From the NCBI GenBank assembly GCA_965644495.1, contig CBFFSA010000019.1:175555-239554 (forward strand): DNA of 64,000 nucleotides. Reading direction: 5' to 3'. Positions within the stretch are counted from its first letter, which is position 1, and every line of letters starts with the position of its first letter. Of the stretch, positions 2,563 to 64,000 are shown piece after piece. The DNA comes from Perkinsela sp. CCAP 1560/9. Its lineage: Eukaryota > Protista > Euglenozoa: Kinetoplastea. The notes beneath the pieces were generated by a model that saw only the letters and a list, made by a program, of their open reading frames with translations, did not search any database and had not been told where the DNA came from. Made by a program: the position numbers and the translations under genes.

Positions 2563-2660
2563 ATGGCAAAAAGGGGTCATTAGTCCACTCGGTCGGTCTT
2601 CAATTTGATATTTCGCTCAAATTGATAAAAATATCTTTATGAAAACGCATCTTTAAAATA

Positions 2661-3142: not shown

Positions 3143-3325
3143 TATGTATTTTTAAAATAATCTTTCATCTTATTTTCTCTCACTCTCTTGATTTAATAAA
3201 AACCAGTGATTAGTTTTGTACAAACACATACACCAAAATCTCATTATCTCTTTTTTCTTTATTTCAAAGGTCCTTTTCTTTAATCCTTCTCCTCACACAA
3301 CAAACACAACCGCACCGTCCGTTTC

Positions 3326-4429
3326 ATGGCACATTTTTCAAACCTCCCTATTCCCGAAAAATCGTTTCCTGCGCAAGAGGCAAAACCTTTGCCTCCTTGT
3401 TTCACCTTTTCTTTTTGTTCTTCAACAACAACAACAGCAACGACTAAAAAACAATCTTTTAAAACGCAACCTACAAAACATATTCAGTGGTCACACAAAC
3501 TGATTGGGAGCTCGACTGAAAAATTGCTGCCATCGCCGATTCACAAATCGCGCCTCTGGTGGGCACAAAAACAAAAAATTTGCTCTCGTCCTCAATCTGC
3601 AATTATTCCTTTAGCGGGTACAAAAGGCATCGTTCTTCGCTGTCCTGTTGGGGGAAGTGTCACGCTTTCCTTTGCCGCGCTCTCCCGTGATTTTTGTGAC
3701 GAATGGATAAACGAAAGTCAACCGAATGTGAGGGGAGCGAAATCTCGGCGAACGCAAGTCGTAGAACTCGAACGAAGTCCCGTTTTAGCAAAAACACAAA
3801 AAGCCAAAGGCTTCCCGGTTTCGCCAATTTTTTCACCGGAAAAGACAAGTCCCCAACAGGATACACACAGAAAAACAAAATATAGGACTGGACGCAAAGT
3901 GCGACTTATGATTTCACCTCTTTCTTCATTTCCGTCCAACGCACCACTTGAAGCGTACAACACAGCATCCTTTTCAAAACACGGCCATCGAGAAGAAACA
4001 CAATCGAATTTTTCGTCTTCTTCGGACAGCTTTTCACCGGATGGGCGGGATTCTTTTTTTCGCCCACCTTCTTCTTTTTTTTCTTTTTCTTCTTCTTCAT
4101 GTTCTTCAGTACCTCGTTCTTTTACTCTCGCTACCTTAACGGCACAACGCCCAAGCCAAGGTTTGTCTTTTTGCCTACCCCCAGGGTCGTATTCGGTGTA
4201 TGGCATAAAATACAACGAGAGCAATCCGAGTCCAAACTCTGATTCTTCTTCTCAAGCTTTCGGTTCTCTAGAACGTTTCAAAAATAAAGAAAACTCGAAA
4301 ATGGATTTTCGGGATTTCATAAAAACTAAAAGGAGAAGAAAACAACAAAAGGAAGAAAGCAGAGATTTCTCTTTTTCTGGTGTTTATCTTCAATGGAAAC
4401 AGAAAGGTATTCGGGTGTATAATGCGTGA
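3326..4429 (+). CDS. Hypothetical Ser-rich protein
   Basis: 367-aa ORF on the same strand as the cluster, with an upstream pyrimidine tract; no recognisable domain. Confidence 0.55.
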   Translation: MAHFSNLPIPEKSFPAQEAKPLPPCFTFSFCSSTTTTATTKKQSFKTQPTKHIQWSHKLIGSSTEKLLPSPIHKSRLWWAQKQKICSRPQSAIIPLAGTKGIVLRCPVGGSVTLSFAALSRDFCDEWINESQPNVRGAKSRRTQVVELERSPVLAKTQKAKGFPVSPIFSPEKTSPQQDTHRKTKYRTGRKVRLMISPLSSFPSNAPLEAYNTASFSKHGHREETQSNFSSSSDSFSPDGRDSFFRPPSSFFSFSSSSCSSVPRSFTLATLTAQRPSQGLSFCLPPGSYSVYGIKYNESNPSPNSDSSSQAFGSLERFKNKENSKMDFRDFIKTKRRRKQQKEESRDFSFSGVYLQWKQKGIRVYNA

Positions 4430-41325: not shown

Positions 41326-41406
41326 GCGTCCATACCCAAGTGGTTAAGGGGCCTGACTTGAAATCAGGTGTGTTCTCACGCGCAGGTTCGAACCGTGCTG
41401 GGCGCG
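41326..41406 (+). tRNA. tRNA-Ser(TGA), T-stem variant (C62G)
   Basis: TTCGAACCGTGC instead of TTCGAACCCTGC, giving a G52:G62 mismatch. Confidence 0.85.
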
Positions 41407-42815
41407 TTTTTGCGATTCTCTTCGTTCACAATCGTGTGGCCGCTTTTGGGCGCGCGCGAGAGACGCAACGTGAATCGCAGAAGCAATGGTACATTTTAGG
41501 GTATTTCTTTGCTGAAATGAAGTCTTTTTGGCCTGTGTAGCAGATGACGTTTTGGCGGCAGAGACGGTGAATGGGTAGATGGCCGTGCGCGTGTCAAATG
41601 TAAAAGCCCGAAAAGTGTACCGCTTTTTAGCGCATCATATCTTAAAATTCAAAATGACGTCAGATTTACCTCTTTCCGCCTGCACGGTGAAGGGGGGTTT
41701 TCAGATATCTCTGGACGCGACGTTTGCATGACTTCCGTGCATGGCGTGCGTCGATTGCGAACGCCGAACCAGCAAGCTACACCTCCTGAGTGGTCGTGCT
41801 TCGCGCGATATTTTCTGTAGAGATAGAGTTTTTCCGTTAGTCAGTATGATTGCGAAACAAAACGTGGGTTTCGCCAGTCCACTTTTTGTCCGTTCTTCCC
41901 TGAATCAAATCTTAAACAATTTTAACCCTTTCTAATTGATGAGCGTTTCTGATCGCTCGTGCTTTGCTCTGATATTTGCTTTGGGGCACTCTTTTCACAT
42001 GATTTCACTGATACTATAAGACTTCCCCTCTTCTAACGCAAGAATTTGTTGTCATCGGACATTCTTTTAGTCAAATCAATGCTTGATTGCACAAGCTTCC
42101 TGCATCTCAAGGGGGGGGGTTGTATTTCTCTACACCTCTTTCACTTTTCACCTGCTCTTCCAAGCAACAGGGTCACAGGGCGCGCGCGTATTGTAATAGT
42201 GTGGTGGAAAAACGTCGGTTTCACACGAAACTCGCATCCACCGTGCGACCCCATTCCGTGGAGAACGATCTTTGTTTTCTTCGATCGCACTGATTCCGTT
42301 AGATGCACAGAGCGTGATTTCACGTGAATCGAACAATTCCGCGAGATGTTTTACTTGGGCAAAGCAGGGCAGCACATGAACAATGAAAACAGGACGCGCA
42401 ATGGCGCGGAACACCTTCCACGTGACACCTTCCGAAACGCGTTCTGCACAATCCAGGTATAAAACAACGAATTTCTTCGCCCGGCCGTTGCAAAGACCCA
42501 CCCCTTACCGATAGATTTCGTAGCTCTGCTCTAAACGTGAACGCATCGTGCTCAACCTCTCTTCCCGACTATGTCATCGCAAAAATTGTATGTGTCACTT
42601 CTGGGCCGTTCGCATGGGCATGTGTTGGGCACACTCAAACCCCCATTGCATTCATCAATGCGACCTACGGTTGTGAATGTCGCCTTGCTTGGGGGGGGGG
42701 GGGGCTGTAAGGATCGTTAAGCGAGCGAAATCGGGGAGTTTCCATTATGACATGAATTAGCAAGGTAAAGTGCACCGCTATGGACACACAAAATTCGAGA
42801 CACACCACGACGGAA

Positions 42816-42896
42816 GCGTCCATACCCAAGTGGTTAAGGGGCCTGACTTGAAATCAGGTGTGTTCTCACGCGCAGGTTCGAACCGTGCTGGGCGCG
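42816..42896 (+). tRNA. tRNA-Ser(TGA), T-stem variant (C62G)
   Basis: Same variant as 41326. Confidence 0.85.
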
Positions 42897-44307
42897 TTTT
42901 TGCGATTCTCTTCGTTCACAATCGTGTGGCCGCTTTTGGGCGCGCGCGAGAGACGCAACGTGAATCGCAGAAGCAATGGTACATTTTAGGGTATTTTCTT
43001 TGCTGAAATGAAGTCTTTTTGGCCTGTGTAGCAGATGACGTTTTGGCGGCAGAGACGGTGAATGGGTAGATGGCCGTGCGCGTGTCAAATGTAAAAGCCC
43101 GAAAAGTGTACCGCTTTTTAGCGCATCATATCTTAAAATTCAAAATGACGTCAGATTTACCTCTTTCCGCCTGCACGGTGAAGGGGGGTTTTCAGATATC
43201 TCTGGACGCGACGTTTGCATGACTTCCGTGCATGGCGTGCGTCGATTGCGAAACGCCGAACCAGCAAGCTACACCTCCTGAGTGGTCGTGCTTCGCGCGA
43301 TATTTTCTGTAGAGATAGAGTTTTTCCGTTAGTCAGTATGATTGCGAAACAAAACGTGGGTTTCGCCAGTCCACTTTTTGTCCGTTCTTCCCTGAATCAA
43401 ATCTTAAACAATTTTAACCCTTTCTAATTGATGAGCGTTCTGATCGCTCGTGCTTTGCTCTGATATTTGCTTTGGGCACTCTTTTCACATGATTTCACTG
43501 ATACTATAAGACTTCCCCTCTTCTAACGCAAGAATTTGTTGTCATCGGACATTCTTTTAGTCAAATCAATGCTTGATTGCACAAGCTTCCTGCATCTCAA
43601 GGGGGGGGGTTGTATTTCTCTACACCTCTTTCACTTTTCACCTGCTCTTCCAAGCAACAGGGTCACAGGGCGCGCGCGTATTGTAATAGTGTGGTGGAAA
43701 AACGTCGGTTTCACACGAAACTCGCATCCACCGTGCGACCCCATTCCGTGGAGAACGATCTTTGTTTTCTTCGATCGCACTGATTCCGTTAGATGCACAG
43801 AGCGTGATTTCACGTGAATCGAACAATTCCGCGAGATGTTTTACTTGGGGCAAAGCAGGGCAGCACATGAACAATGAAAACAGGACGCGCAATGGCGCGG
43901 AACACCTTCCACGTGACACCTTCCGAAACGCGTTCTGCACAATCCAGGTATAAAACAACGAATTTCTTCGCCCGGCCGTTGCAAAGACCCACCCCTTACC
44001 GATAGATTTCGTAGCTCTGCTCTAAACGTGAACGCATCGTGCTCAACCTCTCTTCCCGACTATGTCATCGCAAAAATTGTATGTGTCACTTCTGGGCCGT
44101 TCGCATGGGCATGTGTTGGGCACACTCAAACCCCCATTGCATTCATCAATGCGACCTACGGTTGTGAATGTCGCCTTGCTTGGGGGGGGGGGGGGGCTGT
44201 AAGGATCGTTAAGCGAGCGAAATCGGGGAGTTTCCATTATGACATGAATTAGCAAGGTAAAGTGCACCGCTATGGACACACAAAATTCGAGACACACCAC
44301 GACGGAA

Positions 44308-44388
44308 GCGTCCATACCCAAGTGGTTAAGGGGCCTGACTTGAAATCAGGTGTGTTCTCACGCGCAGGTTCGAACCGTGCTGGGCGCG
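44308..44388 (+). tRNA. tRNA-Ser(TGA), T-stem variant (C62G)
   Basis: Same variant as 41326. Confidence 0.85.
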
Positions 44389-45799
44389 TTTTTGCGATTC
44401 TCTTCGTTCACAATCGTGTGGCCGCTTTTGGGCGCGCGCGAGAGACGCAACGTGAATCGCAGAAGCAATGGTACATTTTAGGGTATTTTCTTTGCTGAAA
44501 TGAAGTCTTTTTGGCCTGTGTAGCAGATGACGTTTTGGCGGCAGAGACGGTGAATGGGTAGATGGCCGTGCGAGTGTCAAATGTAAAAGCCCGAAAAGTG
44601 TACCGCTTTTTAGCGCATCATATCTTAAAATTCAAAATGACGTCAGATTTACCTCTTTCCGCCTGCACGGTGAAGGGGGGTTTTCAGATATCTCTGGACG
44701 CGACGTTTGCATGACTTCCGTGCATGGCGTGCGTCGATTGCGAAACGCCGAACCAGCAAGCTACACCTCCTGAGTGGTCGTGCTTCGCGCGATATTTTCT
44801 GTAGAGATAGAGTTTTTCCGTTAGTCAGTATGATTGCGAAACAAAACGTGGGTTTCGCCAGTCCACTTTTTGTCCGTTCTTCCCTGAATCAAATCTTAAA
44901 CAATTTTAACCCTTTCTAATTGATGAGCGTTCTGATCGCTCGTGCTTTGCTCTGATATTTGCTTTGGGCACTCTTTTCACATGATTTCACTGATACTATA
45001 AGACTTCCCCTCTTCTAACGCAAGAATTTGTTGTCATCGGACATTCTTTTAGTCAAATCAATGCTTGATTGCACAAGCTTCCTGCATCTCAAGGGGGGGG
45101 GTTGTATTTCTCTACACCTCTTTCACTTTTCACCTGCTCTTCCAAGCAACAGGGTCACAGGGCGCGCGCGTATTGTAATAGTGTGGTGGAAAAACGTCGG
45201 TTTCACACGAAACTCGCATCCACCGTGCGACCCCATTCCGTGGAGAACGATCTTTGTTTTCTTCGATCGCACTGATTCCGTTAGATGCACAGAGCGTGAT
45301 TTCACGTGAATCGAACAATTCCGCGAGATGTTTTACTTGGGGCAAAGCAGGGCAGCACATGAACAATGAAAACAGGACGCGCAATGGCGCGGAACACCTT
45401 CCACGTGACACCTTCCGAAACGCGTTCTGCACAATCCAGGTATAAAACAACGAATTTCTTCGCCCGGCCGTTGCAAAGACCCACCCCTTACCGATAGATT
45501 TCGTAGCTCTGCTCTAAACGTGAACGCATCGTGCTCAACCTCTCTTCCCGACTATGTCATCGCAAAAATTGTATGTGTCACTTCTGGGCCGTTCGCATGG
45601 GCATGTGTTGGGCACACTCAAACCCCCATTGCATTCATCAATGCGACCTACGGTTGTGAATGTCGCCTTGCTTGGGGGGGGGGGGGGGCTGTAAGGATCG
45701 TTAAGCGAGCGAAATCGGGGAGTTTCCATTATGACATGAATTAGCAAGGTAAAGTGCACCGCTATGGACACACAAAATTCGAGACACACCACGACGGAA

Positions 45800-45880
45800 G
45801 CGTCCATACCCAAGTGGTTAAGGGGCCTGACTTGAAATCAGGTGTGTTCTCACGCGCAGGTTCGAACCGTGCTGGGCGCG
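45800..45880 (+). tRNA. tRNA-Ser(TGA), T-stem variant (C62G)
   Basis: Same variant as 41326. Confidence 0.85.
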
Positions 45881-47291
45881 TTTTTGCGATTCTCTTCGTT
45901 CACAATCGTGTGGCCGCTTTTGGGCGCGCGCGAGAGACGCAACGTGAATCGCAGAAGCAATGGTACATTTTAGGGTATTTTCTTTGCTGAAATGAAGTCT
46001 TTTTGGCCTGTGTAGCAGATGACGTTTTGGCGGCAGAGACGGTGAATGGGTAGATGGCCGTGCGAGTGTCAAATGTAAAAGCCCGAAAAGTGTACCGCTT
46101 TTTAGCGCATCATATCTTAAAATTCAAAATGACGTCAGATTTACCTCTTTCCGCCTGCACGGTGAAGGGGGGTTTTCAGATATCTCTGGACGCGACGTTT
46201 GCATGACTTCCGTGCATGGCGTGCGTCGATTGCGAAACGCCGAACCAGCAAGCTACACCTCCTGAGTGGTCGTGCTTCGCGCGATATTTTCTGTAGAGAT
46301 AGAGTTTTTCCGTTAGTCAGTATGATTGCGAAACAAAACGTGGGTTTCGCCAGTCCACTTTTTGTCCGTTCTTCCCTGAATCAAATCTTAAACAATTTTA
46401 ACCCTTTCTAATTGATGAGCGTTCTGATCGCTCGTGCTTTGCTCTGATATTTGCTTTGGGCACTCTTTTCACATGATTTCACTGATACTATAAGACTTCC
46501 CCTCTTCTAACGCAAGAATTTGTTGTCATCGGACATTCTTTTAGTCAAATCAATGCTTGATTGCACAAGCTTCCTGCATCTCAAGGGGGGGGGTTGTATT
46601 TCTCTACACCTCTTTCACTTTTCACCTGCTCTTCCAAGCAACAGGGTCACAGGGCGCGCGCGTATTGTAATAGTGTGGTGGAAAAACGTCGGTTTCACAC
46701 GAAACTCGCATCCACCGTGCGACCCCATTCCGTGGAGAACGATCTTTGTTTTCTTCGATCGCACTGATTCCGTTAGATGCACAGAGCGTGATTTCACGTG
46801 AATCGAACAATTCCGCGAGATGTTTTACTTGGGGCAAAGCAGGGCAGCACATGAACAATGAAAACAGGACGCGCAATGGCGCGGAACACCTTCCACGTGA
46901 CACCTTCCGAAACGCGTTCTGCACAATCCAGGTATAAAACAACGAATTTCTTCGCCCGGCCGTTGCAAAGACCCACCCCTTACCGATAGATTTCGTAGCT
47001 CTGCTCTAAACGTGAACGCATCGTGCTCAACCTCTCTTCCCGACTATGTCATCGCAAAAATTGTATGTGTCACTTCTGGGCCGTTCGCATGGGCATGTGT
47101 TGGGCACACTCAAACCCCCATTGCATTCATCAATGCGACCTACGGTTGTGAATGTCGCCTTGCTTGGGGGGGGGGGGGGGCTGTAAGGATCGTTAAGCGA
47201 GCGAAATCGGGGAGTTTCCATTATGACATGAATTAGCAAGGTAAAGTGCACCGCTATGGACACACAAAATTCGAGACACACCACGACGGAA

Positions 47292-47372
47292 GCGTCCATA
47301 CCCAAGTGGTTAAGGGGCCTGACTTGAAATCAGGTGTGTTCTCACGCGCAGGTTCGAACCGTGCTGGGCGCG
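47292..47372 (+). tRNA. tRNA-Ser(TGA), T-stem variant (C62G)
   Basis: Same variant as 41326. Confidence 0.85.
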
Positions 47373-48782
47373 TTTTTGCGATTCTCTTCGTTCACAATCG
47401 TGTGGCCGCTTTTGGGCGCGCGCGAGAGACGCAACGTGAATCGCAGAAGCAATGGTACATTTTAGGGTATTTTCTTTGCTGAAATGAAGTCTTTTTGGCC
47501 TGTGTAGCAGATGACGTTTTGGCGGCAGAGACGGTGAATGGGTAGATGGCCGTGCGAGTGTCAAATGTAAAAGCCCGAAAAGTGTACCGCTTTTTAGCGC
47601 ATCATATCTTAAAATTCAAAATGACGTCAGATTTACCTCTTTCCGCCTGCACGGTGAAGGGGGGTTTTCAGATATCTCTGGACGCGACGTTTGCATGACT
47701 TCCGTGCATGGCGTGCGTCGATTGCGAAACGCCGAACCAGCAAGCTACACCTCCTGAGTGGTCGTGCTTCGCGCGATATTTTCTGTAGAGATAGAGTTTT
47801 TCCGTTAGTCAGTATGATTGCGAAACAAAACGTGGGTTTCGCCAGTCCACTTTTTGTCCGTTCTTCCCTGAATCAAATCTTAAACAATTTTAACCCTTTC
47901 TAATTGATGAGCGTTCTGATCGCTCGTGCTTTGCTCTGATATTTGCTTTGGGCACTCTTTTCACATGATTTCACTGATACTATAAGACTTCCCCTCTTCT
48001 AACGCAAGAATTTGTTGTCATCGGACATTCTTTTAGTCAAATCAATGCTTGATTGCACAAGCTTCCTGCATCTCAAGGGGGGGGGTTGTATTTCTCTACA
48101 CCTCTTTCACTTTTCACCTGCTCTTCCAAGCAACAGGGTCACAGGGCGCGCGCGTATTGTAATAGTGTGGTGGAAAAACGTCGGTTTCACACGAAACTCG
48201 CATCCACCGTGCGACCCCATTCCGTGGAGAACGATCTTTGTTTTCTTCGATCGCACTGATTCCGTTAGATGCACAGAGCGTGATTTCACGTGAATCGAAC
48301 AATTCCGCGAGATGTTTTACTTGGGGCAAAGCAGGGCAGCACATGAACAATGAAAACAGGACGCGCAATGGCGCGGAACACCTTCCACGTGACACCTTCC
48401 GAAACGCGTTCTGCACAATCCAGGTATAAAACAACGAATTTCTTCGCCCGGCCGTTGCAAAGACCCACCCCTTACCGATAGATTTCGTAGCTCTGCTCTA
48501 AACGTGAACGCATCGTGCTCAACCTCTCTTCCCGACTATGTCATCGCAAAAATTGTATGTGTCACTTCTGGGCCGTTCGCATGGGCATGTGTTGGGCACA
48601 CTCAAACCCCCATTGCATTCATCAATGCGACCTACGGTTGTGAATGTCGCCTTGCTTGGGGGGGGGGGGGGCTGTAAGGATCGTTAAGCGAGCGAAATCG
48701 GGGAGTTTCCATTATGACATGAATTAGCAAGGTAAAGTGCACCGCTATGGACACACAAAATTCGAGACACACCACGACGGAA

Positions 48783-48863
48783 GCGTCCATACCCAAGTGG
48801 TTAAGGGGCCTGACTTGAAATCAGGTGTGTTCTCACGCGCAGGTTCGAACCGTGCTGGGCGCG
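48783..48863 (+). tRNA. tRNA-Ser(TGA), T-stem variant (C62G)
   Basis: Same variant as 41326. Confidence 0.85.
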
Positions 48864-50273
48864 TTTTTGCGATTCTCTTCGTTCACAATCGTGTGGCCGC
48901 TTTTGGGCGCGCGCGAGAGACGCAACGTGAATCGCAGAAGCAATGGTACATTTTAGGGTATTTTCTTTGCTGAAATGAAGTCTTTTTGGCCTGTGTAGCA
49001 GATGACGTTTTGGCGGCAGAGACGGTGAATGGGTAGATGGCCGTGCGAGTGTCAAATGTAAAAGCCCGAAAAGTGTACCGCTTTTTAGCGCATCATATCT
49101 TAAAATTCAAAATGACGTCAGATTTACCTCTTTCCGCCTGCACGGTGAAGGGGGGTTTTCAGATATCTCTGGACGCGACGTTTGCATGACTTCCGTGCAT
49201 GGCGTGCGTCGATTGCGAAACGCCGAACCAGCAAGCTACACCTCCTGAGTGGTCGTGCTTCGCGCGATATTTTCTGTAGAGATAGAGTTTTTCCGTTAGT
49301 CAGTATGATTGCGAAACAAAACGTGGGTTTCGCCAGTCCACTTTTTGTCCGTTCTTCCCTGAATCAAATCTTAAACAATTTTAACCCTTTCTAATTGATG
49401 AGCGTTCTGATCGCTCGTGCTTTGCTCTGATATTTGCTTTGGGCACTCTTTTCACATGATTTCACTGATACTATAAGACTTCCCCTCTTCTAACGCAAGA
49501 ATTTGTTGTCATCGGACATTCTTTTAGTCAAATCAATGCTTGATTGCACAAGCTTCCTGCATCTCAAGGGGGGGGGTTGTATTTCTCTACACCTCTTTCA
49601 CTTTTCACCTGCTCTTCCAAGCAACAGGGTCACAGGGCGCGCGCGTATTGTAATAGTGTGGTGGAAAAACGTCGGTTTCACACGAAACTCGCATCCACCG
49701 TGCGACCCCATTCCGTGGAGAACGATCTTTGTTTTCTTCGATCGCACTGATTCCGTTAGATGCACAGAGCGTGATTTCACGTGAATCGAACAATTCCGCG
49801 AGATGTTTTACTTGGGGCAAAGCAGGGCAGCACATGAACAATGAAAACAGGACGCGCAATGGCGCGGAACACCTTCCACGTGACACCTTCCGAAACGCGT
49901 TCTGCACAATCCAGGTATAAAACAACGAATTTCTTCGCCCGGCCGTTGCAAAGACCCACCCCTTACCGATAGATTTCGTAGCTCTGCTCTAAACGTGAAC
50001 GCATCGTGCTCAACCTCTCTTCCCGACTATGTCATCGCAAAAATTGTATGTGTCACTTCTGGGCCGTTCGCATGGGCATGTGTTGGGCACACTCAAACCC
50101 CCATTGCATTCATCAATGCGACCTACGGTTGTGAATGTCGCCTTGCTTGGGGGGGGGGGGGGCTGTAAGGATCGTTAAGCGAGCGAAATCGGGGAGTTTC
50201 CATTATGACATGAATTAGCAAGGTAAAGTGCACCGCTATGGACACACAAAATTCGAGACACACCACGACGGAA

Positions 50274-50354
50274 GCGTCCATACCCAAGTGGTTAAGGGGC
50301 CTGACTTGAAATCAGGTGTGTTCTCACGCGCAGGTTCGAACCGTGCTGGGCGCG
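50274..50354 (+). tRNA. tRNA-Ser(TGA), T-stem variant (C62G)
   Basis: Same variant as 41326. Confidence 0.85.
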
Positions 50355-51764
50355 TTTTTGCGATTCTCTTCGTTCACAATCGTGTGGCCGCTTTTGGGCG
50401 CGCGCGAGAGACGCAACGTGAATCGCAGAAGCAATGGTACATTTTAGGGTATTTTCTTTGCTGAAATGAAGTCTTTTTGGCCTGTGTAGCAGATGACGTT
50501 TTGGCGGCAGAGACGGTGAATGGGTAGATGGCCGTGCGAGTGTCAAATGTAAAAGCCCGAAAAGTGTACCGCTTTTTAGCGCATCATATCTTAAAATTCA
50601 AAATGACGTCAGATTTACCTCTTTCCGCCTGCACGGTGAAGGGGGGTTTTCAGATATCTCTGGACGCGACGTTTGCATGACTTCCGTGCATGGCGTGCGT
50701 CGATTGCGAAACGCCGAACCAGCAAGCTACACCTCCTGAGTGGTCGTGCTTCGCGCGATATTTTCTGTAGAGATAGAGTTTTTCCGTTAGTCAGTATGAT
50801 TGCGAAACAAAACGTGGGTTTCGCCAGTCCACTTTTTGTCCGTTCTTCCCTGAATCAAATCTTAAACAATTTTAACCCTTTCTAATTGATGAGCGTTCTG
50901 ATCGCTCGTGCTTTGCTCTGATATTTGCTTTGGGCACTCTTTTCACATGATTTCACTGATACTATAAGACTTCCCCTCTTCTAACGCAAGAATTTGTTGT
51001 CATCGGACATTCTTTTAGTCAAATCAATGCTTGATTGCACAAGCTTCCTGCATCTCAAGGGGGGGGGTTGTATTTCTCTACACCTCTTTCACTTTTCACC
51101 TGCTCTTCCAAGCAACAGGGTCACAGGGCGCGCGCGTATTGTAATAGTGTGGTGGAAAAACGTCGGTTTCACACGAAACTCGCATCCACCGTGCGACCCC
51201 ATTCCGTGGAGAACGATCTTTGTTTTCTTCGATCGCACTGATTCCGTTAGATGCACAGAGCGTGATTTCACGTGAATCGAACAATTCCGCGAGATGTTTT
51301 ACTTGGGGCAAAGCAGGGCAGCACATGAACAATGAAAACAGGACGCGCAATGGCGCGGAACACCTTCCACGTGACACCTTCCGAAACGCGTTCTGCACAA
51401 TCCAGGTATAAAACAACGAATTTCTTCGCCCGGCCGTTGCAAAGACCCACCCCTTACCGATAGATTTCGTAGCTCTGCTCTAAACGTGAACGCATCGTGC
51501 TCAACCTCTCTTCCCGACTATGTCATCGCAAAAATTGTATGTGTCACTTCTGGGCCGTTCGCATGGGCATGTGTTGGGCACACTCAAACCCCCATTGCAT
51601 TCATCAATGCGACCTACGGTTGTGAATGTCGCCTTGCTTGGGGGGGGGGGGGGCTGTAAGGATCGTTAAGCGAGCGAAATCGGGGAGTTTCCATTATGAC
51701 ATGAATTAGCAAGGTAAAGTGCACCGCTATGGACACACAAAATTCGAGACACACCACGACGGAA

Positions 51765-51845
51765 GCGTCCATACCCAAGTGGTTAAGGGGCCTGACTTGA
51801 AATCAGGTGTGTTCTCACGCGCAGGTTCGAACCGTGCTGGGCGCG
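51765..51845 (+). tRNA. tRNA-Ser(TGA), T-stem variant (C62G)
   Basis: Same variant as 41326. Confidence 0.85.
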
Positions 51846-53334: not shown

Positions 53335-54743
53335 TTTTTGCGATTCTCTTCGTTCACAATCGTGTGGCCGCTTTTGGGCGCGCGCGAGAGACGCAACGTG
53401 AATCGCAGAAGCAATGGTACATTTTAGGGTATTTTCTTTGCTGAAATGAAGTCTTTTTGGCCTGTGTAGCAGATGACGTTTTGGCGGCAGAGACGGTGAA
53501 TGGGTAGATGGCCGTGCGCGTGTCAAATGTAAAAGCCCGAAAAGTGTACCGCTTTTTAGCGCATCATATCTTAAAATTCAAAATGACGTCAGATTTACCT
53601 CTTTCCGCCTGCACGGTGAAGGGGGGTTTTCAGATATCTCTGGACGCGACGTTTGCATGACTTCCGTGCATGGCGTGCGTCGATTGCGAAACGCCGAACC
53701 AGCAAGCTACACCTCCTGAGTGGTCGTGCTTCGCGCGATATTTTCTGTAGAGATAGAGTTTTTCCGTTAGTCAGTATGATTGCGAAACAAAACGTGGGTT
53801 TCGCCAGTCCACTTTTTGTCCGTTCTTCCCTGAATCAAATCTTAAACAATTTTAACCCTTTCTAATTGATGAGCGTTCTGATCGCTCGTGCTTTGCTCTG
53901 ATATTTGCTTTGGGCACTCTTTTCACATGATTTCACTGATACTATAAGACTTCCCCTCTTCTAACGCAAGAATTTGTTGTCATCGGACATTCTTTTAGTC
54001 AAATCAATGCTTGATTGCACAAGCTTCCTGCATCTCAAGGGGGGGGTTGTATTTCTCTACACCTCTTTCACTTTTCACCTGCTCTTCCAAGCAACAGGGT
54101 CACAGGGCGCGCGCGTATTGTAATAGTGTGGTGGAAAAACGTCGGTTTCACACGAAACTCGCATCCACCGTGCGACCCCATTCCGTGGAGAACGATCTTT
54201 GTTTTCTTCGATCGCACTGATTCCGTTAGATGCACAGAGCGTGATTTCACGTGAATCGAACAATTCCGCGAGATGTTTTACTTGGGGCAAAGCAGGGCAG
54301 CACATGAACAATGAAAACAGGACGCGCAATGGCGCGGAACACCTTCCACGTGACACCTTCCGAAACGCGTTCTGCACAATCCAGGTATAAAACAACGAAT
54401 TTCTTCGCCCGGCCGTTGCAAAGACCCACCCCTTACCGATAGATTTCGTAGCTCTGCTCTAAACGTGAACGCATCGTGCTCAACCTCTCTTCCCGACTAT
54501 GTCATCGCAAAAATTGTATGTGTCACTTCTGGGCCGTTCGCATGGGCATGTGTTGGGCACACTCAAACCCCCATTGCATTCATCAATGCGACCTACGGTT
54601 GTGAATGTCGCCTTGCTTGGGGGGGGGGGGGGCTGTAAGGATCGTTAAGCGAGCGAAATCGGGGAGTTTCCATTATGACATGAATTAGCAAGGTAAACTG
54701 CACCGCTATGGACACACAAAATTCGAGACACACCACGACGGAA

Positions 54744-54824
54744 GCGTCCATACCCAAGTGGTTAAGGGGCCTGACTTGAAATCAGGTGTGTTCTCAGGCG
54801 CAGGTTCGAACCCTGCTGGGCGCG
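54744..54824 (+). tRNA. tRNA-Ser(TGA), variable-arm variant
   Basis: TTCTCAGGCG instead of TTCTCACGCG; one variable-arm pair lost. Confidence 0.85.
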
Positions 54825-55620
54825 TTTTTGCGATTCTCTTCGTTCACAATCGTGTGGCCGCTTTTGGGCGCGCGCGAGAGACGCAACGTGAATCGCAGAA
54901 GCAATGGTACATTTTAGGGTATTTTCTTTGCTGAAATGAAGTCTTTTTGGCCTGTGTAGCAGATGACGTTTTGGCGGCAGAGACGGTGAATGGGTAGATG
55001 GCCGTGCGCGTGTCAAATGTAAAAGCCCGAAAAGTGTACCGCTTTTTAGCGCATCATATCTTAAAATTCAAAATGACGTCAGATTTACCTCTTTCCGCCT
55101 GCACGGTGAAGGGGGGTTTTCAGATATCTCTGGACGCGACGTTTGCATGACTTCCGTGCATGGCGTGCGTCGATTGCGAAACGCCGAACCAGCAAGCTAC
55201 ACCTCCTGAGTGGTCGTGCTTCGCGCGATATTTTCTGTAGAGATAGAGTTTTTCCGTTAGTCAGTATGATTGCGAAACAAAACGTGGGTTTCGCCAGTCC
55301 ACTTTTTGTCCGTTCTTCCCTGAATCAAATCTTAAACAATTTTAACCCTTTCTAATTGATGAGCGTTCTGATCGCTCGTGCTTTGCTCTGATATTTGCTT
55401 TGGGCACTCTTTTCACATGATTTCACTGATACTATAAGACTTCCCCTCTTCTAACGCAAGAATTTGTTGTCATCGGACATTCTTTTAGTCAAATCAATGC
55501 TTGATTGCACAAGCTTCCTGCATCTCAAGGGGGGGGGTTGTATTTCTCTACACCTCTTTCACTTTTCACCTGCTCTTCCAAGCAACAGGGTCACAGGGCG
55601 CGCGCGTATTGTAATAGTGT

Positions 55621-57117
55621 CTTGTTGACTCTTACCGCTATCTGGGAAACATTCAGGATTCAGGCGTTTCTTCGCCAGTAAAAGACCGCTTAAGGCTCAC
55701 CTGGGCCGCATTTCGGAAGCTCAAGGGCATTTGGGACTCGCCACTGAGTGCATCAACAAAACTGCGTTTGTTTGATTGCCTCGTTTACCCAATCATGACC
55801 TTTGGTGCCGCTTCGCTTTCCATATCCAACAAAATGCTTCGGCAAACAGAAGTTGAGCTCAATATGATGCGAAGATTTTGCTGTAATTGTGCTAAATTGG
55901 ACGAGTTTGGACACTGCTACCCTATCGAGTCACTTTATTGCGGCACTCCTCGTTTCTCCACCGTACATCGCGTTAGTCGGGCTAAAATTGTTGGTCACAT
56001 TCTAAGGCACTCATTCATGTTTCGAGATCTTATCCAGTGGAAATGCAGCGATAGGAAACGAAATCTCTCACCAAGCGAAGCTTGCTTTCACGATCTGGAC
56101 ATTACCGAAGAACAAGCCCTCGTATACGCTCAGGATCGAGATCACTGGAAAAAGTTATGTGAAGATTTAAAGGTAGCACTCGAACCGCTTCCGGATTACG
56201 AAAGACTCTCTTCTCCTAGATGGAAAAGTAAACATGCCCACGCCTTGAAGCAAGATACGCCTTACGATTTGCAATTTGTCGAAGAAAGTTCTGATCCTTT
56301 TCCATTAAAAGATGATGAGGTTCACTTCTATATTGATGGTTCAGTCCGTGCCTTGCGGGTGACAAACGAGATCAGAGCAGGTGCTGGAATTGTTGTGCTT
56401 CAACGATGGACAACCGATAAATGTTTTTCCTTAACATTAGATGTTGATAGTGCCGAGCAAGCTGAGGCTGAATCTTTTCGAGAGGCGCTTAAAAGAATAC
56501 CGGACGGAGCAAAAGATATCGTAGTACACACAGATTCGTTCTATGTGTGGAACTTCTTTCATCACGTTCGCATCCGGAGACGGGTAATAGGGTATGACCG
56601 CGTCGTCAACAGAAACATTCTACAAGATATAGATCATCAGGTGCGGAAACTAAAATCTCAGAATGTTAATTTGTATGTGTGCAAAGTTAAATCTCATAAT
56701 GGGAACGAATATAACGACAAAGCTGATGTCTTGGCTCTTTCGGCGTCACGAAGGCCGTTAAAATCACAAGAGGCAAAGAGGTTGAAGACGACAAAAGCTC
56801 CTTCTTCTTCTTCTTCTGACCCAATATCCTCGCCAGAAGCGACACTCATATTGCGCCCAAGAAGGAATGTTGACACTATTTCATCCAAACGCAAGAATAA
56901 CACTACTGCAAGTGGGGCTCTATCCAAAAAGGGTAGCTCACTGTCTGGAGAGCCTGGAGTGAAACCGTCTGAAAAAACGAATGCTATGATCCTGAGTAGG
57001 CCTGATGTCGGTAAAGAAAAAAGTTGCAAGGGAAATAGGGAGTCTGATAAGATCGTGGAAACAAAGGGAAAGAAGTCTCCCAAGAGAAAGAAGGCTTCAC
57101 GAAAATTAGAACAGTAG
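55621..57117 (+). CDS. Partial LINE polyprotein: RT domain 7 and thumb, RNase H, basic tail
   Basis: Frame open from the first inserted base: VDSYRYLG...RLTWAAFRKLKGIWDSPLSASTKLRLFDCLVYPIMTFGA. RNase H motifs FYIDGS, GAGIV, AEAES, HTDS, KVKSHNGNEYNDKADVLA. Confidence 0.88.
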   Translation, partial: LVDSYRYLGNIQDSGVSSPVKDRLRLTWAAFRKLKGIWDSPLSASTKLRLFDCLVYPIMTFGAASLSISNKMLRQTEVELNMMRRFCCNCAKLDEFGHCYPIESLYCGTPRFSTVHRVSRAKIVGHILRHSFMFRDLIQWKCSDRKRNLSPSEACFHDLDITEEQALVYAQDRDHWKKLCEDLKVALEPLPDYERLSSPRWKSKHAHALKQDTPYDLQFVEESSDPFPLKDDEVHFYIDGSVRALRVTNEIRAGAGIVVLQRWTTDKCFSLTLDVDSAEQAEAESFREALKRIPDGAKDIVVHTDSFYVWNFFHHVRIRRRVIGYDRVVNRNILQDIDHQVRKLKSQNVNLYVCKVKSHNGNEYNDKADVLALSASRRPLKSQEAKRLKTTKAPSSSSSDPISSPEATLILRPRRNVDTISSKRKNNTTASGALSKKGSSLSGEPGVKPSEKTNAMILSRPDVGKEKSCKGNRESDKIVETKGKKSPKRKKASRKLEQ

Positions 57118-57168
57118 TATCTTTAATCGGTTTTTAACCGATCTATTAGGATAGGATAGGATAGGAGG
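55621..57168 (+). mobile_element. 5'-truncated non-LTR retrotransposon (RTE-like RT C-terminus plus RNase H)
   Basis: 13-bp TSD ATTGTAATAGTGT (55608-20, 57169-81); 3' hairpin ATCGGTT-TTT-AACCGAT; (ATAGG)n tail. Confidence 0.92.
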
Positions 57169-57796
57169 ATTGTAATAGTGTGGTGGAAAAACGTCGGTTT
57201 CACACGAAACTCGCATCCACCGTGCGACCCCATTCCGTGGAGAACGATCTTTGTTTTCTTCGATCGCACTGATTCCGTTAGATGCACAGAGCGTGATTTC
57301 ACGTGAATCGAACAATTCCGCGAGATGTTTTACTTGGGGCAAAGCAGGGCAGCACATGAACAATGAAAACAGGACGCGCAATGGCGCGGAACACCTTCCA
57401 CGTGACACCTTCCGAAACGCGTTCTGCACAATCCAGGTATAAAACAACGAATTTCTTCGCCCGGCCGTTGCAAAGACCCACCCCTTACCGATAGATTTCG
57501 TAGCTCTGCTCTAAACGTGAACGCATCGTGCTCAACCTCTCTTCCCGACTATGTCATCGCAAAAATTGTATGTGTCACTTCTGGGCCGTTCGCATGGGCA
57601 TGTGTTGGGCACACTCAAACCCCCATTGCATTCATCAATGCGACCTACGGTTGTGAATGTCGCCTTGCTTGGGGGGGGGGGGGGGCTGTAAGGATCGTTA
57701 AGCGAGCGAAATCGGGGAGTTTCCATTATGACATGAATTAGCAAGGTAAAGTGCACCGCTATGGACACACAAAATTCGAGACACACCACGACGGAA

Positions 57797-57877
57797 GCGT
57801 CCATACCCAAGTGGTTAAGGGGCCTGACTTGAAATCAGGTGTGTTCTCACGCGCAGGTTCGAACCCTGCTGGGCGCG
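57797..57877 (+). tRNA. tRNA-Ser(TGA)
   Basis: Same sequence as the 29451 copy. Confidence 0.95.
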
Positions 57878-59288
57878 TTTTTGCGATTCTCTTCGTTCAC
57901 AATCGTGTGGCCGCTTTTGGGCGCGCGCGAGAGACGCAACGTGAATCGCAGAAGCAGTGGTACATTTTAGGGTATTTTCTTTGCTGAAATGAAGTCTTTT
58001 TGGCCTGTGTAGCAGATGACGTTTTGGCGGCAGAGACGGTGAATGGGTAGATGGCCGTGCGCGTGTCAAATGTAAAAGCCCGAAAAGTGTACCGCTTTTT
58101 AGCGCATCATATCTTAAAATTCAAAATGACGTCAGATTTACCTCTTTCCGCCTGCACGGTGAAGGGGGGTTTTCAGATATCTCTGGACGCGACGTTTGCA
58201 TGACTTCCGTGCATGGCGTGCGTCGATTGCGAAACGCCGAACCAGCAAGCTACACCTCCTGAGTGGTCGTGCTTCGCGCGATATTTTCTGTAGAGATAGA
58301 GTTTTTCCGTTAGTCAGTATGATTGCGAAACAAAACGTGGGTTTCGCCAGTCCACTTTTTGTCCGTTCTTCCCTGAATCAAATCTTAAACAATTTTAACC
58401 CTTTCTAATTGATGAGCGTTCTGATCGCTCGTGCTTTGCTCTGATATTTGCTTTGGGCACTCTTTTCACATGATTTCACTGATACTATAAGACTTCCCCT
58501 CTTCTAACGCAAGAATTTGTTGTCATCGGACATTCTTTTAGTCAAATCAATGCTTGATTGCACAAGCTTCCTGCATCTCAAGGGGGGGGTTGTATTTCTC
58601 TACACCTCTTTCACTTTTCACCTGCTCTTCCAAGCAACAGGGTCACAGGGCGCGCGCGTATTGTAATAGTGTGGTGGAAAAACGTCGGTTTCACACGAAA
58701 CTCGCATCCACCGTGCGACCCCATTCCGTGGAGAACGATCTTTGTTTTCTTCGATCGCACTGATTCCGTTAGATGCACAGAGCGTGATTTCACGTGAATC
58801 GAACAATTCCGCGAGATGTTTTACTTGGGGCAAAGCAGGGCAGCACATGAACAATGAAAACAGGACGCGCAATGGCGCGGAACACCTTCCACGTGACACC
58901 TTCCGAAACGCGTTCTGCACAATCCAGGTATAAAACAACGAATTTCTTCGCCCGGCCGTTGCAAAGACCCACCCCTTACCGATAGATTTCGTAGCTCTGC
59001 TCTAAACGTGAACGCATCGTGCTCAACCTCTCTTCCCGACTATGTCATCGCAAAAATTGTATGTGTCACTTCTGGGCCGTTCGCATGGGCATGTGTTGGG
59101 CACACTCAAACCCCCATTGCATTCATCAATGCGACCTACGGTTGTGAATGTCGCCTTGCTTGGGGGGGGGGGGGGGGCTGTAAGGATCGTTAAGCGAGCG
59201 AAATCGGGGAGTTTCCATTATGACATGAATTAGCAAGGTAAAGTGCACCGCTATGGACACACAAAATTCGAGACACACCACGACGGAA

Positions 59289-59369
59289 GCGTCCATACCC
59301 AAGTGGTTAAGGGGCCTGACTTGAAATCAGGTGTGTTCTCACGCGCAGGTTCGAACCCTGCTGGGCGCG
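59289..59369 (+). tRNA. tRNA-Ser(TGA)
   Basis: Same sequence as the 29451 copy. Confidence 0.95.
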
Positions 59370-60776
59370 TTTTTGCGATTCTCTTCGTTCACAATCGTGT
59401 GGCCGCTTTTGGGCGCGCGCGAGAGACGCAACGTGAATCGCAGAAGCAATGGTACATTTTAGGGTATTTTCTTTGCTGAAATGAAGTCTTTTTGGCCTGT
59501 GTAGCAGATGACGTTTTGGCGGCAGAGACGGTGAATGGGTAGATGGCCGTGCGCGTGTCAAATGTAAAAGCCCGAAAAGTGTACCGCTTTTTAGCGCATC
59601 ATATCTTAAAATTCAAAATGACGTCAGATTTACCTCTTTCCGCCTGCACGGTGAAGGGGGGTTTTCAGATATCTCTGGACGCGACGTTTGCATGACTTCC
59701 GTGCATGGCGTGCGTCGATTGCGAAACGCCGAACCAGCAAGCTACACCTCCTGAGTGGTCGTGCTTCGCGCGATATTTTCTGTAGAGATAGAGTTTTTCC
59801 GTTAGTCAGTATGATTGCGAAACAAAACGTGGGTTTCGCCAGTCCACTTTTTGTCCGTTCTTCCCTGAATCAAATCTTAAACAATTTTAACCCTTTCTAA
59901 TTGATGAGCGTTCTGATCGCTCGTGCTTTGCTCTGATATTTGCTTTGGGCACTCTTTTCACATGATTTCACTGATACTATAAGACTTCCCCTCTTCTAAC
60001 GCAAGAATTTGTTGTCATCGGACATTCTTTTAGTCAAATCAATGCTTGATTGCACAAGCTTCCTGCATCTCAAGGGGGGGGGTTGTATTTCTCTACACCT
60101 CTTTCACTTTTCACCTGCTCTTCCAAGCAACAGGGTCACAGGGCGCGCGCGTATTGTAATAGTGTGGTGGAAAAACGTCGGTTTCACACGAAACTCGCAT
60201 CCACCGTGCGACCCCATTCCGTGGAGAACGATCTTTGTTTTCTTCGATCGCACTGATTCCGTTAGATGCACAGAGCGTGATTTCACGTGAATCGAACAAT
60301 TCCGCGAGATGTTTTACTTGGGGCAAAGCAGGGCAGCACATGAACAATGAAAACAGGACGCGCAATGGCGCGGAACACCTTCCACGTGACACCTTCCGAA
60401 ACGCGTTCTGCACAATCCAGGTATAAAACAACGAATTTCTTCGCCCGGCCGTTGCAAAGACCCACCCCTTACCGATAGATTTCGTAGCTCTGCTCTAAAC
60501 GTGAACGCATCGTGCTCAACCTCTCTTCCCGACTATGTCATCGCAAAAATTGTATGTGTCACTTCTGGGCCGTTCGCATGGGCATGTGTTGGGCACACTC
60601 AAACCCCCATTGCATTCATCAATGCGACCTACGGTTGTGAATGTCGCCTTGCTTGGGGGGGGGGGCTGTAAGGATCGTTAAGCGAGCGAAATCGGGGAGT
60701 TTCCATTATGACATGAATTAGCAAGGTAAAGTGCACCGCTATGGACACACAAAATTCGAGACACACCACGACGGAA

Positions 60777-60857
60777 GCGTCCATACCCAAGTGGTTAAGG
60801 GGCCTGACTTGAAATCAGGTGTGTTCTCACGCGCAGGTTCGAACCCTGCTGGGCGCG
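60777..60857 (+). tRNA. tRNA-Ser(TGA)
   Basis: Same sequence as the 29451 copy. Confidence 0.95.
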
Positions 60858-61924
60858 TTTTTGCGATTCTCTTCGTTCACAATCGTGTGGCCGCTTTTGG
60901 GCGCGCGCGAGAGACGCAACGTGAATCGCAGAAGCAATGGTACATTTTAGGGTATTTTCTTTGCTGAAATGAAGTCTTTTTGGCCTGTGTAGCAGATGAC
61001 GTTTTGGCGGCAGAGACGGTGAATGGGTAGATGGCCGTGCGCGTGTCAAATGTAAAAGCCATAAAAGTGTACCGCTTTTTAGCGCATCATATCTTAAAAT
61101 TCAAAATGACGTCAGATTTACCTCTTTCCGCCTGCACGGTGAAGGGGGGTTTTCAGATATCTCTGGACGCGACGTTTGCATGACTTCCGTGCATGGCGTG
61201 CGTCGATTGCGAAACGCCGAACCAGCAAGCTACACCTCCTGAGTGGTCGTGCTTCGCGCGATATTTTCTGTAGAGATAGAGTTTTTCCGTTAGTCAGTAT
61301 GATTGCGAAACAAAACGTGGGTTTCGCCAGTCCACTTTTTGTCCGTTCTTCCCTGAATCAAATCTTAAACAATTTTAACCCTTTCTAATTGATGAGTGTT
61401 CTGATCGCTCGTGCTTTGCTCTGATATTTGCTTTGGGCACTCTTTTCACATGATTTCACTGATACTATAAGACTTCCCCTCTTCTAACGCAAGAATTTGT
61501 TGTCATCGGACATTCTTTTAGTCAAATCAATGCTTGATTGCACAAGCTTCCTGCATCTCAAGGGGGGGGGTTGTATTTCTCTACACCTCTTTCACTTTTC
61601 ACCTGCTCTTCCAAGCAACAGGGTCACAGGGCGCGCGCGTATTGTAATAGTGTGGCGGAAAAACGTCGGTTTCACACGAAACTCGCATCCACCGTGCGAC
61701 CCCATTCCGTGGAGAACGATCTTTGTTTTCTTCGATCGCACTGATTCCGTTAGATGCACAGAGCGTGATTTCACGTGAATCGAACAATTCCGCGAGATAT
61801 TTTACTTGGGGCAAAGTAGGGCAGCACATGAACAATGAAAACAGGACGCGCAATGGCGCGGAAGACCTTCCACGTGACACCTTCCGAAACGCGTTCTGCA
61901 CAATCCAGGTATAAAACAACGAAT

Positions 61925-63627
61925 AGAAACGAAGAAAGAGGAAGAAAGAGGAAGAAAGAGGAAGAAAGAGGGAGAAAGAGGAAGAAAGAGGAAGAAAGAG
62001 GAAGAAAGAGGAAGAAAGAGGAAGAAAGAGGAAGAAAGAGGAAGAAAGAGGAAGAAAGAGGAAGAAAGAGGAAGAAAGAGGAAGAAAGAGGAAGAAAGAG
62101 GAAGAAAGAGGAAGAAAGAGGAAGAAAGAGGAAGAAAGAGGAAGAAAGAGGAAGAAAGAGGAAGAAAGAGGAAGAAAGAGGAAGAAAGAGGAAGAAAGAG
62201 GAAGAAAGAGGAAGAAAGAGGAAGAAAGAGGAAGAAAGAGGAAGAAAGAGGAAGAAAGAGGAAGAAAGAGGAAGAAAGAGGAAGAAAGAGGAAGAAAGAG
62301 GAAGAAAGAGGAAGAAAGAGGAAGAAAGAGGAAGAAAGAGGAAGAAAGAGGAAGAAAGAGGAAGAAAGAGGAAGAAAGAGGAAGAAAGAGGAAGAAAGAG
62401 GAAGAAAGAGGAAGAAAGAGGAAGAAAGAGGAAGAAAGAGGAAGAAAGAGGAAGAAAGAGGAAGAAAGAGGAAGAAAGAGGAAGAAAGAGGAAGAAAGAG
62501 GAAGAAAGAGGAAGAAAGAGGAAGAAAGAGGAAGAAAGAGGAAGAAAGAGGAAGAAAGAGGAAGAAAGAGGAAGAAAGAGGAAGAAAGAGGAAGAAAGAG
62601 GAAGAAAGAGGAAGAAAGAGGAAGAAAGAGGAAGAAAGAGGAAGAAAGAGGAAGAAAGAGGAAGAAAGAGGAAGAAAGAGGAAGAAAGAGGAAGAAAGAG
62701 GAAGAAAGAGGAAGAAAGAGGAAGAAAGAGGAAGAAAGAGGAAGAAAGAGGAAGAAAGAGGAAGAAAGAGGAAGAAAGAGGAAGAAAGAGGAAGAAAGAG
62801 GAAGAAAGAGGAAGAAAGAGGAAGAAAGAGGAAGAAAGAGGAAGAAAGAGGAAGAAAGAGGAAGAAAGAGGAAGAAAGAGGAAGAAAGAGGAAGAAAGAG
62901 GAAGAAAGAGGAAGAAAGAGGAAGAAAGAGGAAGAAAGAGGAAGAAAGAGGAAGAAAGAGGAAGAAAGAGGAAGAAAGAGGAAGAAAGAGGAAGAAAGAG
63001 GAAGAAAGAGGAAGAAAGAGGAAGAAAGAGGAAGAAAGAGGAAGAAAGAGGAAGAAAGAGGAAGAAAGAGGAAGAAAGAGGAAGAAAGAGGAAGAAAGAG
63101 GAAGAAAGAGGAAGAAAGAGGAAGAAAGAGGAAGAAAGAGGAAGAAAGAGGAAGAAAGAGGAAGAAAGAGGAAGAAAGAGGAAGAAAGAGGAAGAAAGAG
63201 GAAGAAAGAGGAAGAAAGAGGAAGAAAGAGGAAGAAAGAGGAAGAAAGAGGAAGAAAGAGGAAGAAAGAGGAAGAAAGAGGAAGAAAGAGGAAGAAAGAG
63301 GAAGAAAGAGGAAGAAAGAGGAAGAAAGAGGAAGAAAGAGGAAGAAAGAGGAAGAAAGAGAGGAAGAAAGAGGAAGAAAGAGGAAGAAAGAGGAAGAAAG
63401 AGGAAGAAAGAGGAAGAAAGAGGAAGAAAGAGGAAGAAAGAGGAAGAAAGAGGAAGAAAGAGGAAGAAAGAGGAAGAAAGAGGAAGAAAGAGGAAGAAAG
63501 AGGAAGAAAGAGGAAGAAAGAGGAAGAAAGAGGAAGAAAGAGGAAGAAAGAGGAAGAAAGAGGAAGAAAGAGGAAGAAAGAGGAAGAAAGAGGAAGAAAG
63601 AGGAAGAAAGAGGAAGAAAGAGGAAGA
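61925..63627 (+). repeat. (GAAGAAAGAG)n, ~170 copies; candidate telomeric tract
   Basis: Almost perfect purine-only decamer; variants only at the proximal edge (AGAAAC at 61925, GGAGAAAGAG at 61971) plus one AG slip at 63361. Confidence 0.95.
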
Positions 63628-63772
63628 TACCGATGACGATGAATTAACCCGCATACTTGCTATTTTGTTAGCAGACTGCTCACTAAAACAAGCAGTAAGC
63701 CTAGCAGTTAATATCACTGGCCACAGTAAAAATAAAATATATGCAATGGCACTTGCGCTACAAAAATCATGA
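63626..63772 (+). CDS. rsmI: 3' fragment of a bacterial-type 16S rRNA C1402 2'-O-methyltransferase
   Basis: RILAILLADCSLKQAVSLAVNITGHSKNKIYAMAL resembles the RsmI C-terminal helical domain (L..LL.E..LK.AA.LAA.ITG..KN.LY..AL). Recognised by eye. Confidence 0.65.
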   Translation, partial: DTDDDELTRILAILLADCSLKQAVSLAVNITGHSKNKIYAMALALQKS

Positions 63773-63917
63773 ACGCCTGCTTTGCAATAATTGGTCATTT
63801 TTGTGACGGATATCATGAATCATCAATGACAATAGGCAATGGAAATAGCATAATGGCCCATTGTATATAAACTCAAAAACAACTGCAAAATACAACTTAT
63901 TGAAAGAGAGTAATGTT

Positions 63918-64000
63918 ATGGCAAATAGTGCAAGCAATTCGATCATCGTACGTTTAGAGTTAGCCAATCGTACCAATTCACTATCACAGGTAACCCAAGC
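63918..64000 (+). CDS. 5' start of a bacterial ACT-domain protein (malic-enzyme-like N-terminus)
   Basis: GAAAGAGAG RBS-like motif, then MANSASNSIIVRLELANRTNSLSQVTQA, similar to the S.SI..RLE..NR.G.L..VT.A ACT start of bacterial NAD-malic enzymes; runs off the window. Confidence 0.5.
   Translation, partial: MANSASNSIIVRLELANRTNSLSQVTQ

Follow-up and report, generated by a model that had tools for sequence, protein, structure and literature searches.

A probable telomere of contig C19

What caps a chromosome of a kinetoplastid when its assembled end carries no TTAGGG? This question is raised by the right end of contig C19, which we analyzed in a window of 64,000 bp (G000:C19:175555-239554). 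Contig C19 has a length of 239,554 bp and the last base of the window is also the last base of the contig. Close to this end, a subtelomeric tandem array of tRNA-Ser genes breaks off and is followed by an array of a purine-only decamer, (GAAGAAAGAG)n. Telomeres of kinetoplastids and other euglenozoans, such as those of Trypanosoma and Leishmania, consist of (TTAGGG)n, and to our knowledge every euglenozoan studied so far uses this repeat. The initial annotation of the locus had proposed that the decamer array is a telomere. The analysis described below supports this proposal: with a probability of about 0.8, the array represents the telomere of one chromosome end of a kinetoplastid in which (GAAGAAAGAG)n / (CTCTTTCTTC)n replaces (TTAGGG)n. 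The purine strand would then be the 3'-ending strand, equivalent to the G-strand of other telomeres.

The search with Tandem Repeats Finder revealed a single array at positions 61931-63627 with a period of 10, 169.5 copies, 99% matches and a score of 3369. A unit-by-unit walk along these 1,697 bp gave 168 perfect GAAGAAAGAG units. One unit carried a substitution (GGAGAAAGAG, unit 5, 61971-61980), and at 63361-63362 two additional bases, AG, were inserted. The array is composed of 1017 A and 680 G residues and is free of C and T. Its purine strand is the + strand and runs 5'->3' toward the contig end. Thus, both the near-perfect conservation of the decamer over about 1.7 kb and the outward direction of the G-containing strand were found as described initially. 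The statement that variants occur at the proximal edge only was correct for the substitution in unit 5, but not for the AG insertion, which is located at 84% of the array length counted from the junction. The variants of the other 13 arrays were either scattered along the array or distal, and most of them were losses of a single base in a homopolymer. Such losses are typical of weakly supported contig ends. The classification of 61931-63627 (+ strand, about 169.5 units) as telomeric array is based on Tandem Repeats Finder, the array walk, the terminal position and polarity of such arrays in the entire genome, and the presence of the decamer in short-read data.

The decamer array is joined to the last, truncated unit of the tRNA-Ser array (60777-61924, + strand), which consists of a tRNA at 60777-60857 and 1,067 bp of spacer and was delimited by local alignment to the preceding unit. 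The two units are identical at 1141 of 1148 positions and the alignment stops at 61924. From this break, another 340 bp would lead to the next tRNA, which agrees with the distance of about 340 bp given in the initial annotation. Past position 61924, the internal units run on as TTCTTCGCC..., whereas the last unit continues with AGAAAC and the decamer. According to direct reading, the irregular junction hexamer AGAAAC (61925-61930, + strand) occupies the space between the break and the regular array. The decamer thus appears to have been added directly to a break within the tRNA-Ser tandem array.

No eukaryotic sequence resumes after the array, as had been stated before: 373 bp of bacterial DNA (63628-64000, + strand) extend to the contig end. 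This tail comprises the 3' end of an rsmI gene (stop codon at 63770-63772), a spacer, and the beginning of a second open reading frame (ORF) starting at 63918. It codes for the last 47 residues of RsmI, an rRNA methyltransferase (match to NCBIfam NF011570 with E 2.3e-4 at profile positions 246-286 of 287), is present as a single copy in the assembly, and is identical at 372 of 373 nt to the Gammaproteobacteria metagenome-assembled genome (MAG) OZ220716.1. The matching position at about 1.77 Mb is located in the interior of the bacterial chromosome. Since the tail corresponds to the chromosome interior of a co-occurring bacterium, it is chimeric and foreign to the C19 chromosome. At the end of a chromosome there is nothing that would contradict an extension, and therefore one chimeric read is sufficient to lengthen a contig there. 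On the basis of these matches we read the 373-bp tail as an artefact of a chimeric read or of an assembly join, which would make the C19 array effectively terminal. The MAG OZ220716.1 is AT-rich and has a size of 2.45 Mb, and the tail probably stems from a bacterium that lives together with the sampled host or inside it.

Decamer arrays at contig ends of the assembly

The assembly has a size of 21 Mb and consists of 110 contigs with 220 ends. A 30-mer composed of three decamer units matched 1904 times in forward and 1711 times in reverse orientation. The reversed sequence, which served as control, gave 0 matches, showing that the abundance of the decamer is not due to chance. Arrays were placed by boundary-pattern searches and by fetching contig ends; the last 2.5 kb of C38 and the array of C64 were left unread. 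In total, 15 contig or sub-contig ends were capped by decamer arrays of 0.19-9.7 kb each, which together amount to about 45 kb. The fetched arrays plus the unread C38 end and the C64 array explain essentially all matches of the 30-mer in the genome.

Arrays of the C-strand were located at the left ends of C8, C21, C28, C44, C64, C65, C72, and C103, and arrays of the purine strand at the right ends of C8, C16, C19, C23, C38, and C56. Consequently, C8 (799,619 bp) has decamer arrays at both ends. The first or last base of the contig was reached by 11 of the 15 arrays (C8 right end, C16, C21, C23, C28, C38, C44, C56, C65, C72, and C103). All 15 arrays are oriented such that the 5'->3' direction of the purine strand points outward (two-sided binomial p ~6e-5). 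Over their whole length the arrays were 74-99% canonical, and a degenerate proximal zone was not observed. (TTAGGG)4 had no match on either strand of the 21-Mb assembly, which confirmed the expected lack of TTAGGG at the other ends.

Apart from the decamer, a single end repeat was observed, at the start of C6. It is a 12-mer, (ATCCAGGGGGGG)n, which was confined to the left end of this contig plus scraps elsewhere. As the exact 12-mer hardly occurs outside the C6 left end, it does not cap chromosomes in general. C-rich repeats of 12-13 nt, of the type (CCCCCCCTGGAT)n, form the beginning of both large contigs C6 (1-590) and C9 (1-105). The fifteenth decamer array belongs to C10. At C10:58423-59968, a 200-N scaffold gap is directly followed by this C-strand array, with which a sub-contig begins, and then by unique sequence. 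Probably, the scaffolder wrongly joined a chromosome start to another piece of 58 kb at this position.

Interstitial copies of the decamer comprised about 3-12 units and were found in C1, C2, C10, C23, and C37; arrays flanked by unique sequence on both sides did not exceed about 125 bp. As the terminal arrays account for about 45 kb and show telomeric polarity, the repeat is not mostly interstitial. At the assembly level, the decamer is therefore a short repeat at ends, with fixed polarity and common to these ends without a competitor. Among the interstitial copies, mini-arrays of about 10-12 units in C1 (397027-397141, 402160-402284, and ~409014) are part of a tandemly repeated unit of about 5.1 kb and lie beside a GC hairpin, and these regions contained no tRNA, Rfam match or long ORF. 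C1 also harbors an interstitial inverted telomere-like pair (3779340-3779448), in which a C-strand stretch of about 29 nt is accompanied by a purine stretch some 50 nt upstream of it. At C10:93640-93670, exactly three decamer units are situated in frame within a reading frame that stays free of stops for at least 480 codons and looks like a reverse transcriptase (RT) according to a motif seen by eye.

The decamer in independent sequencing data and other assemblies

Four public runs of one study, designated X1-X4, hold 70-82% of the sampled words of the window region 54000-62000. Contigs of these runs were compared with positions 60700-62000 of the window. In the decamer bin (61932-61975) the summed word depths, which are not copy numbers, were 64,866, 10,265, 1.39 million and 1.49 million, compared to about 150-2,500 in the tRNA unit. 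Systematic base differences within the decamer were not listed for the run contigs, and in contigs of run X4 remnants of Illumina adapters were located directly beside the decamer. In contigs of runs X1-X3, the continuation of the internal tRNA units, TTCTTCGCCCGG, appeared as a loose end at 61924, as expected. The occurrence of the decamer in the run contigs and of Illumina adapters beside it in X4 shows that the repeat is not a long-read miscall of TTAGGG. Its presence on an orthogonal sequencing platform, which the initial annotation had asked for, was thereby established, and together with the predominance of terminal over interstitial copies and the lack of TTAGGG ends it upholds the interpretation of the decamer as a telomere. 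We consider it highly probable that the decamer serves as chromosome cap.

In the related assembly ERZ24900291, of which 116 kb were sampled via six proteins, the decamer was present at none of the sampled contig ends, and two consecutive TTAGGG units were likewise absent from this sample. A scan of metagenomes for four decamer units detected 10 contigs, all of which were short and contained about 4-13 units. None of these 10 contigs had a long terminal array in telomeric polarity, and they look like GA microsatellites of unrelated eukaryotes.

Junctions between the arrays and the chromosomes

The junctions of 14 arrays were read. Each array was joined to a different unique sequence, the registers in which the arrays started varied, and the first partial unit was usually irregular, such as AGAAAC in C19, with similarly irregular partial units in the other 13. 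Neither a shared subtelomeric block of 400 bp nor a motif marking the site of addition was seen among these junctions. When longer flanks of about 1-5 kb per end were considered, the common content was restricted to scattered pieces of retroelements with varying position and orientation. Unique junctions, a variable register, and the lack of a shared subtelomere point to a de novo, sequence-independent addition of the decamer (chromosome healing), followed by a maintenance process that homogenises the arrays. In the proposed mechanism, the decamer would be added to breaks irrespective of their sequence, and subsequent maintenance would keep the arrays homogeneous. Such a process would be a templated synthesis directed at ends, and its most likely agent would be a telomerase with an RNA template that is a permutation of CUCUUUCUUC. 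For recognizing this template, CT-only 12-15-mers are of little use, since polypyrimidine tracts should contain many of them by chance, and deriving the template register from the junctions would be circular. The presence of unique junctions at every end that was read suggests that the chromosomes of this transposon-rich genome often break and are healed.

Two further observations concern the sequences next to the arrays. In C65, an open frame of 373 codons (2472-3590) reads outward to the telomere junction and is closed by a stop codon that spans this junction (T|GA), so that it resembles a gene truncated by the break. A homologue of this ORF was not detected by word search, nor was there a Pfam hit. 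Furthermore, in the subtelomeres of C38, C44, C8, C28, C56, and C21 and in contigs of ERZ24900291, RVT_1 ORFs are immediately preceded by members of an ORF family that has a weak LsmAD-like match. This family probably represents ORF1 of a retroelement.

Alternative explanations for the arrays

Several results weigh against the interpretation of the C19 array as a telomere. With respect to the assembly, only 15 of the 220 contig ends are capped, while the other 205 are uncapped assembly breaks, and the nine largest contigs that were checked (C1-C7, C9, and C10) all lacked an array on their left side. The arrays might be internal GA-rich satellites at which the long-read assembly breaks. Most contig ends of the assembly are indeed plain breaks, and GA-rich DNA of low complexity is difficult for long-read platforms. 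Broken internal arrays, however, would yield both polarities equally at contig ends, which is in conflict with the observed ratio of 15:0. In addition, arrays longer than about 125 bp never had unique DNA on both flanks, and the single internal case abuts the 200-N gap. An explanation by internal satellites is therefore very unlikely.

A further result of this kind was obtained for the left end of C8 (1-2463). The contig starts here with a purine decamer of variant sequence, GAAGAGGGAG, which extends over 1,035 bp (about 103 units) and is positioned head-on to the normal C-strand array. The variant differs by two A-to-G changes per unit and has no other occurrence in the genome. Either it stems from a fold-back or chimeric read that was miscalled on one strand, or it is a genuine second repeat. 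In nanopore data, telomere repeats are known to be miscalled systematically and in a strand-specific manner, and the strand-specific variant could hint that the decamer as a whole results from systematic basecalling errors in a canonical or modified telomere, e.g., in TTAGGG rich in base J. Contrary to this assumption, the decamer was found unchanged and with very high word depth in contigs of all four runs, with Illumina adapters next to it in one of them. Identical short interstitial copies are embedded in ordinary unique DNA, one of them in frame in the RT-like ORF, and the period is 10 rather than 6. For these reasons, a basecalling artefact appears extremely improbable.

Two points concern the sequencing data. 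The four runs all originate from one study and may include the source data of the assembly, and among the pieces listed no run contig bridged positions 61924/61925. The latter result would fit a situation in which the decamer is the telomere genome-wide, but the C19 end itself is unstable, either because the join to the tRNA array is chimeric or misassembled or because the break was healed in only part of the cells. The bacterial tail shows that this end already carries one chimeric join, and the junction is situated within a 21-copy tandem array, where misjoins come easily. On the other hand, the C19 array is clean, with 168 of 170 units being perfect compared to 74% canonical sequence at the poorly supported C72 end. 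Its junction also has the same form as the other 13, in which the first partial unit is irregular and the array after it perfect, and its polarity is correct. An unstable or misassembled C19 end is thus rather improbable.

Finally, TERT, the catalytic protein expected for a telomerase, was not found. A six-frame search with PF12009 (Telomerase_RBD), carried out in the absence of a eukaryotic positive control, yielded a single match of 18.2 bits, which was an exportin; the corresponding TERT candidate at C6:535416 was rejected since it proved to be an Xpo1-type exportin. PF21399 (TERT_C) gave no match in a six-frame search for which the control genomes were prokaryotic. The search with PF00078 (RVT_1) delivered 1,072 candidates, of which 150 were scored; these comprised strong retroelement matches only, so that a TERT signal would be swamped. 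More than 1,000 RT-domain candidates is the content of a genome of just 21 Mb. In comparison, the MRP family of kinetoplastid guide-RNA-binding proteins was matched above threshold, a profile match which supports the kinetoplastid identity of the host.

These results could mean that the decamer is a true cap made without telomerase, either by recombination or a rolling-circle process resembling alternative lengthening of telomeres (ALT-like) or by a reverse transcriptase borrowed from retroelements. In favor of this possibility, neither of the two TERT-specific Pfam domains was detected while the divergent marker MRP was, the genome is rich in RT-domain candidates, and the arrays are of very different length (0.19-9.7 kb). 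Conversely, the lack of a eukaryotic positive control reduces the significance of the TERT searches. Unique junctions in different registers, irregular first units, and the absence of a shared subtelomere favor a primer-independent templated addition over recombination, which needs homology. A cap formed without telomerase is therefore unlikely in our view, and synthesis by telomerase, which we infer from the structure of the junctions, is somewhat favored. Still more doubtful is a broader scenario, according to which TERT is truly absent, the decamer is written by another enzyme such as a domesticated retroelement reverse transcriptase, and purine-only telomeres with units of about 10 nt arose convergently in nuclei inside eukaryotes in connection with the loss of canonical telomerase and shelterin. 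An origin of the arrays from the heads of long interspersed nuclear elements (LINEs) was also considered. It would be expected to give both polarities and shared element bodies, and it was ruled out because all 15 arrays have one polarity and shared element bodies are missing.

The tRNA-Ser array and further features of the window

The subtelomeric tandem array of tRNA-Ser(TGA) genes extends from 29451 to 61924 on the + strand. According to ARAGORN, Rfam, and the unit spacings, it contains 21 tRNAs in units of about 1.49 kb, one of which is enlarged to 3,053 bp. Eight consecutive units (41326-51845) have a lower Rfam tRNA score than the others (50.8 vs 61.2 bits), which is a variant tRNA that spread through a block of the array. 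The window also encodes a eukaryotic PIP5K, whose only relative in the word search was a protein of 97% identity in ERZ24900291.

Comparison with known telomeres

Literature searches retrieved no paper in which the decamer is reported as a telomeric repeat, nor one that describes the nuclear telomeres of Perkinsela. The decamer arrays resemble the (TTAGGG)n telomeres of kinetoplastids in being short tandem end repeats of kilobase scale with a G-containing strand that ends 3'. They differ by a unit of 10 instead of 6 nt and by an outward strand that lacks T and contains no G run longer than GG, so that folding into G-quadruplexes is not expected. Another difference is that all T residues, the substrate of base J, are located on the C-strand. 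A G-strand without T or G-tracts cannot make use of G-quadruplexes, of Myb/TRF proteins reading TTAGGG or, in kinetoplastids, of base J on both strands. Consequently, the template of the telomerase RNA and the end-binding proteins would have been retuned, or the system replaced. The decamer can thus be regarded as a natural experiment on the question which features of telomeres are dispensable. From a practical point of view, the motif helps curators to spot complete chromosomes in this and related assemblies and to trim chimeric tails like the bacterial one of C19.

Close parallels are telomeres of cryptomonad nucleomorphs, to which the initial annotation had already pointed. Their repeats are GA9 in Cryptomonas paramecium, GA17 in Hemiselmis andersenii, and (AG)7AAG6A in Guillardia theta (PMC3017389). 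They share with the decamer a purine-only G-strand, and GA9 is also a 10-nt unit. Moreover, nucleomorphs are the nuclei of endosymbiotic eukaryotes, and a further parallel would exist if the host of the decamer is a Perkinsela-like endosymbiont. In contrast to the 21-Mb kinetoplastid genome, they belong to an unrelated lineage, being red-algal relict nuclei of less than 1 Mb, and their unit sequences are different. In addition, nucleomorph ends possess conserved subtelomeres of ribosomal DNA (rDNA), whereas the junctions of the decamer are all unique.

The terminal repeats of Dictyostelium discoideum, A(G)1-8, are likewise purine-only, but they are irregular and tied to rDNA-derived ends, whereas the decamer is strictly regular. 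De novo addition of telomeres occurs in ciliate macronuclei, during chromatin diminution of Ascaris, and at broken ends of Plasmodium and trypanosomes. The decamer arrays resemble such chromosome healing in that they directly follow arbitrary DNA of non-telomeric origin, start in variable register and lack subtelomeric homology. They differ in that this appears to be the state of every assembled end that was read and involves neither a programmed site nor an experimental break. Unlike the HeT-A/TART telomeres of Drosophila, in which retroelement copies are lined up head to tail and a short terminal repeat is absent, the ends carry a 10-bp repeat, and the retroelement fragments in the subtelomeres have no fixed order or orientation. 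The purine-only decamer is therefore a variant of a documented purine-only type of telomere, which is unusual for Euglenozoa.

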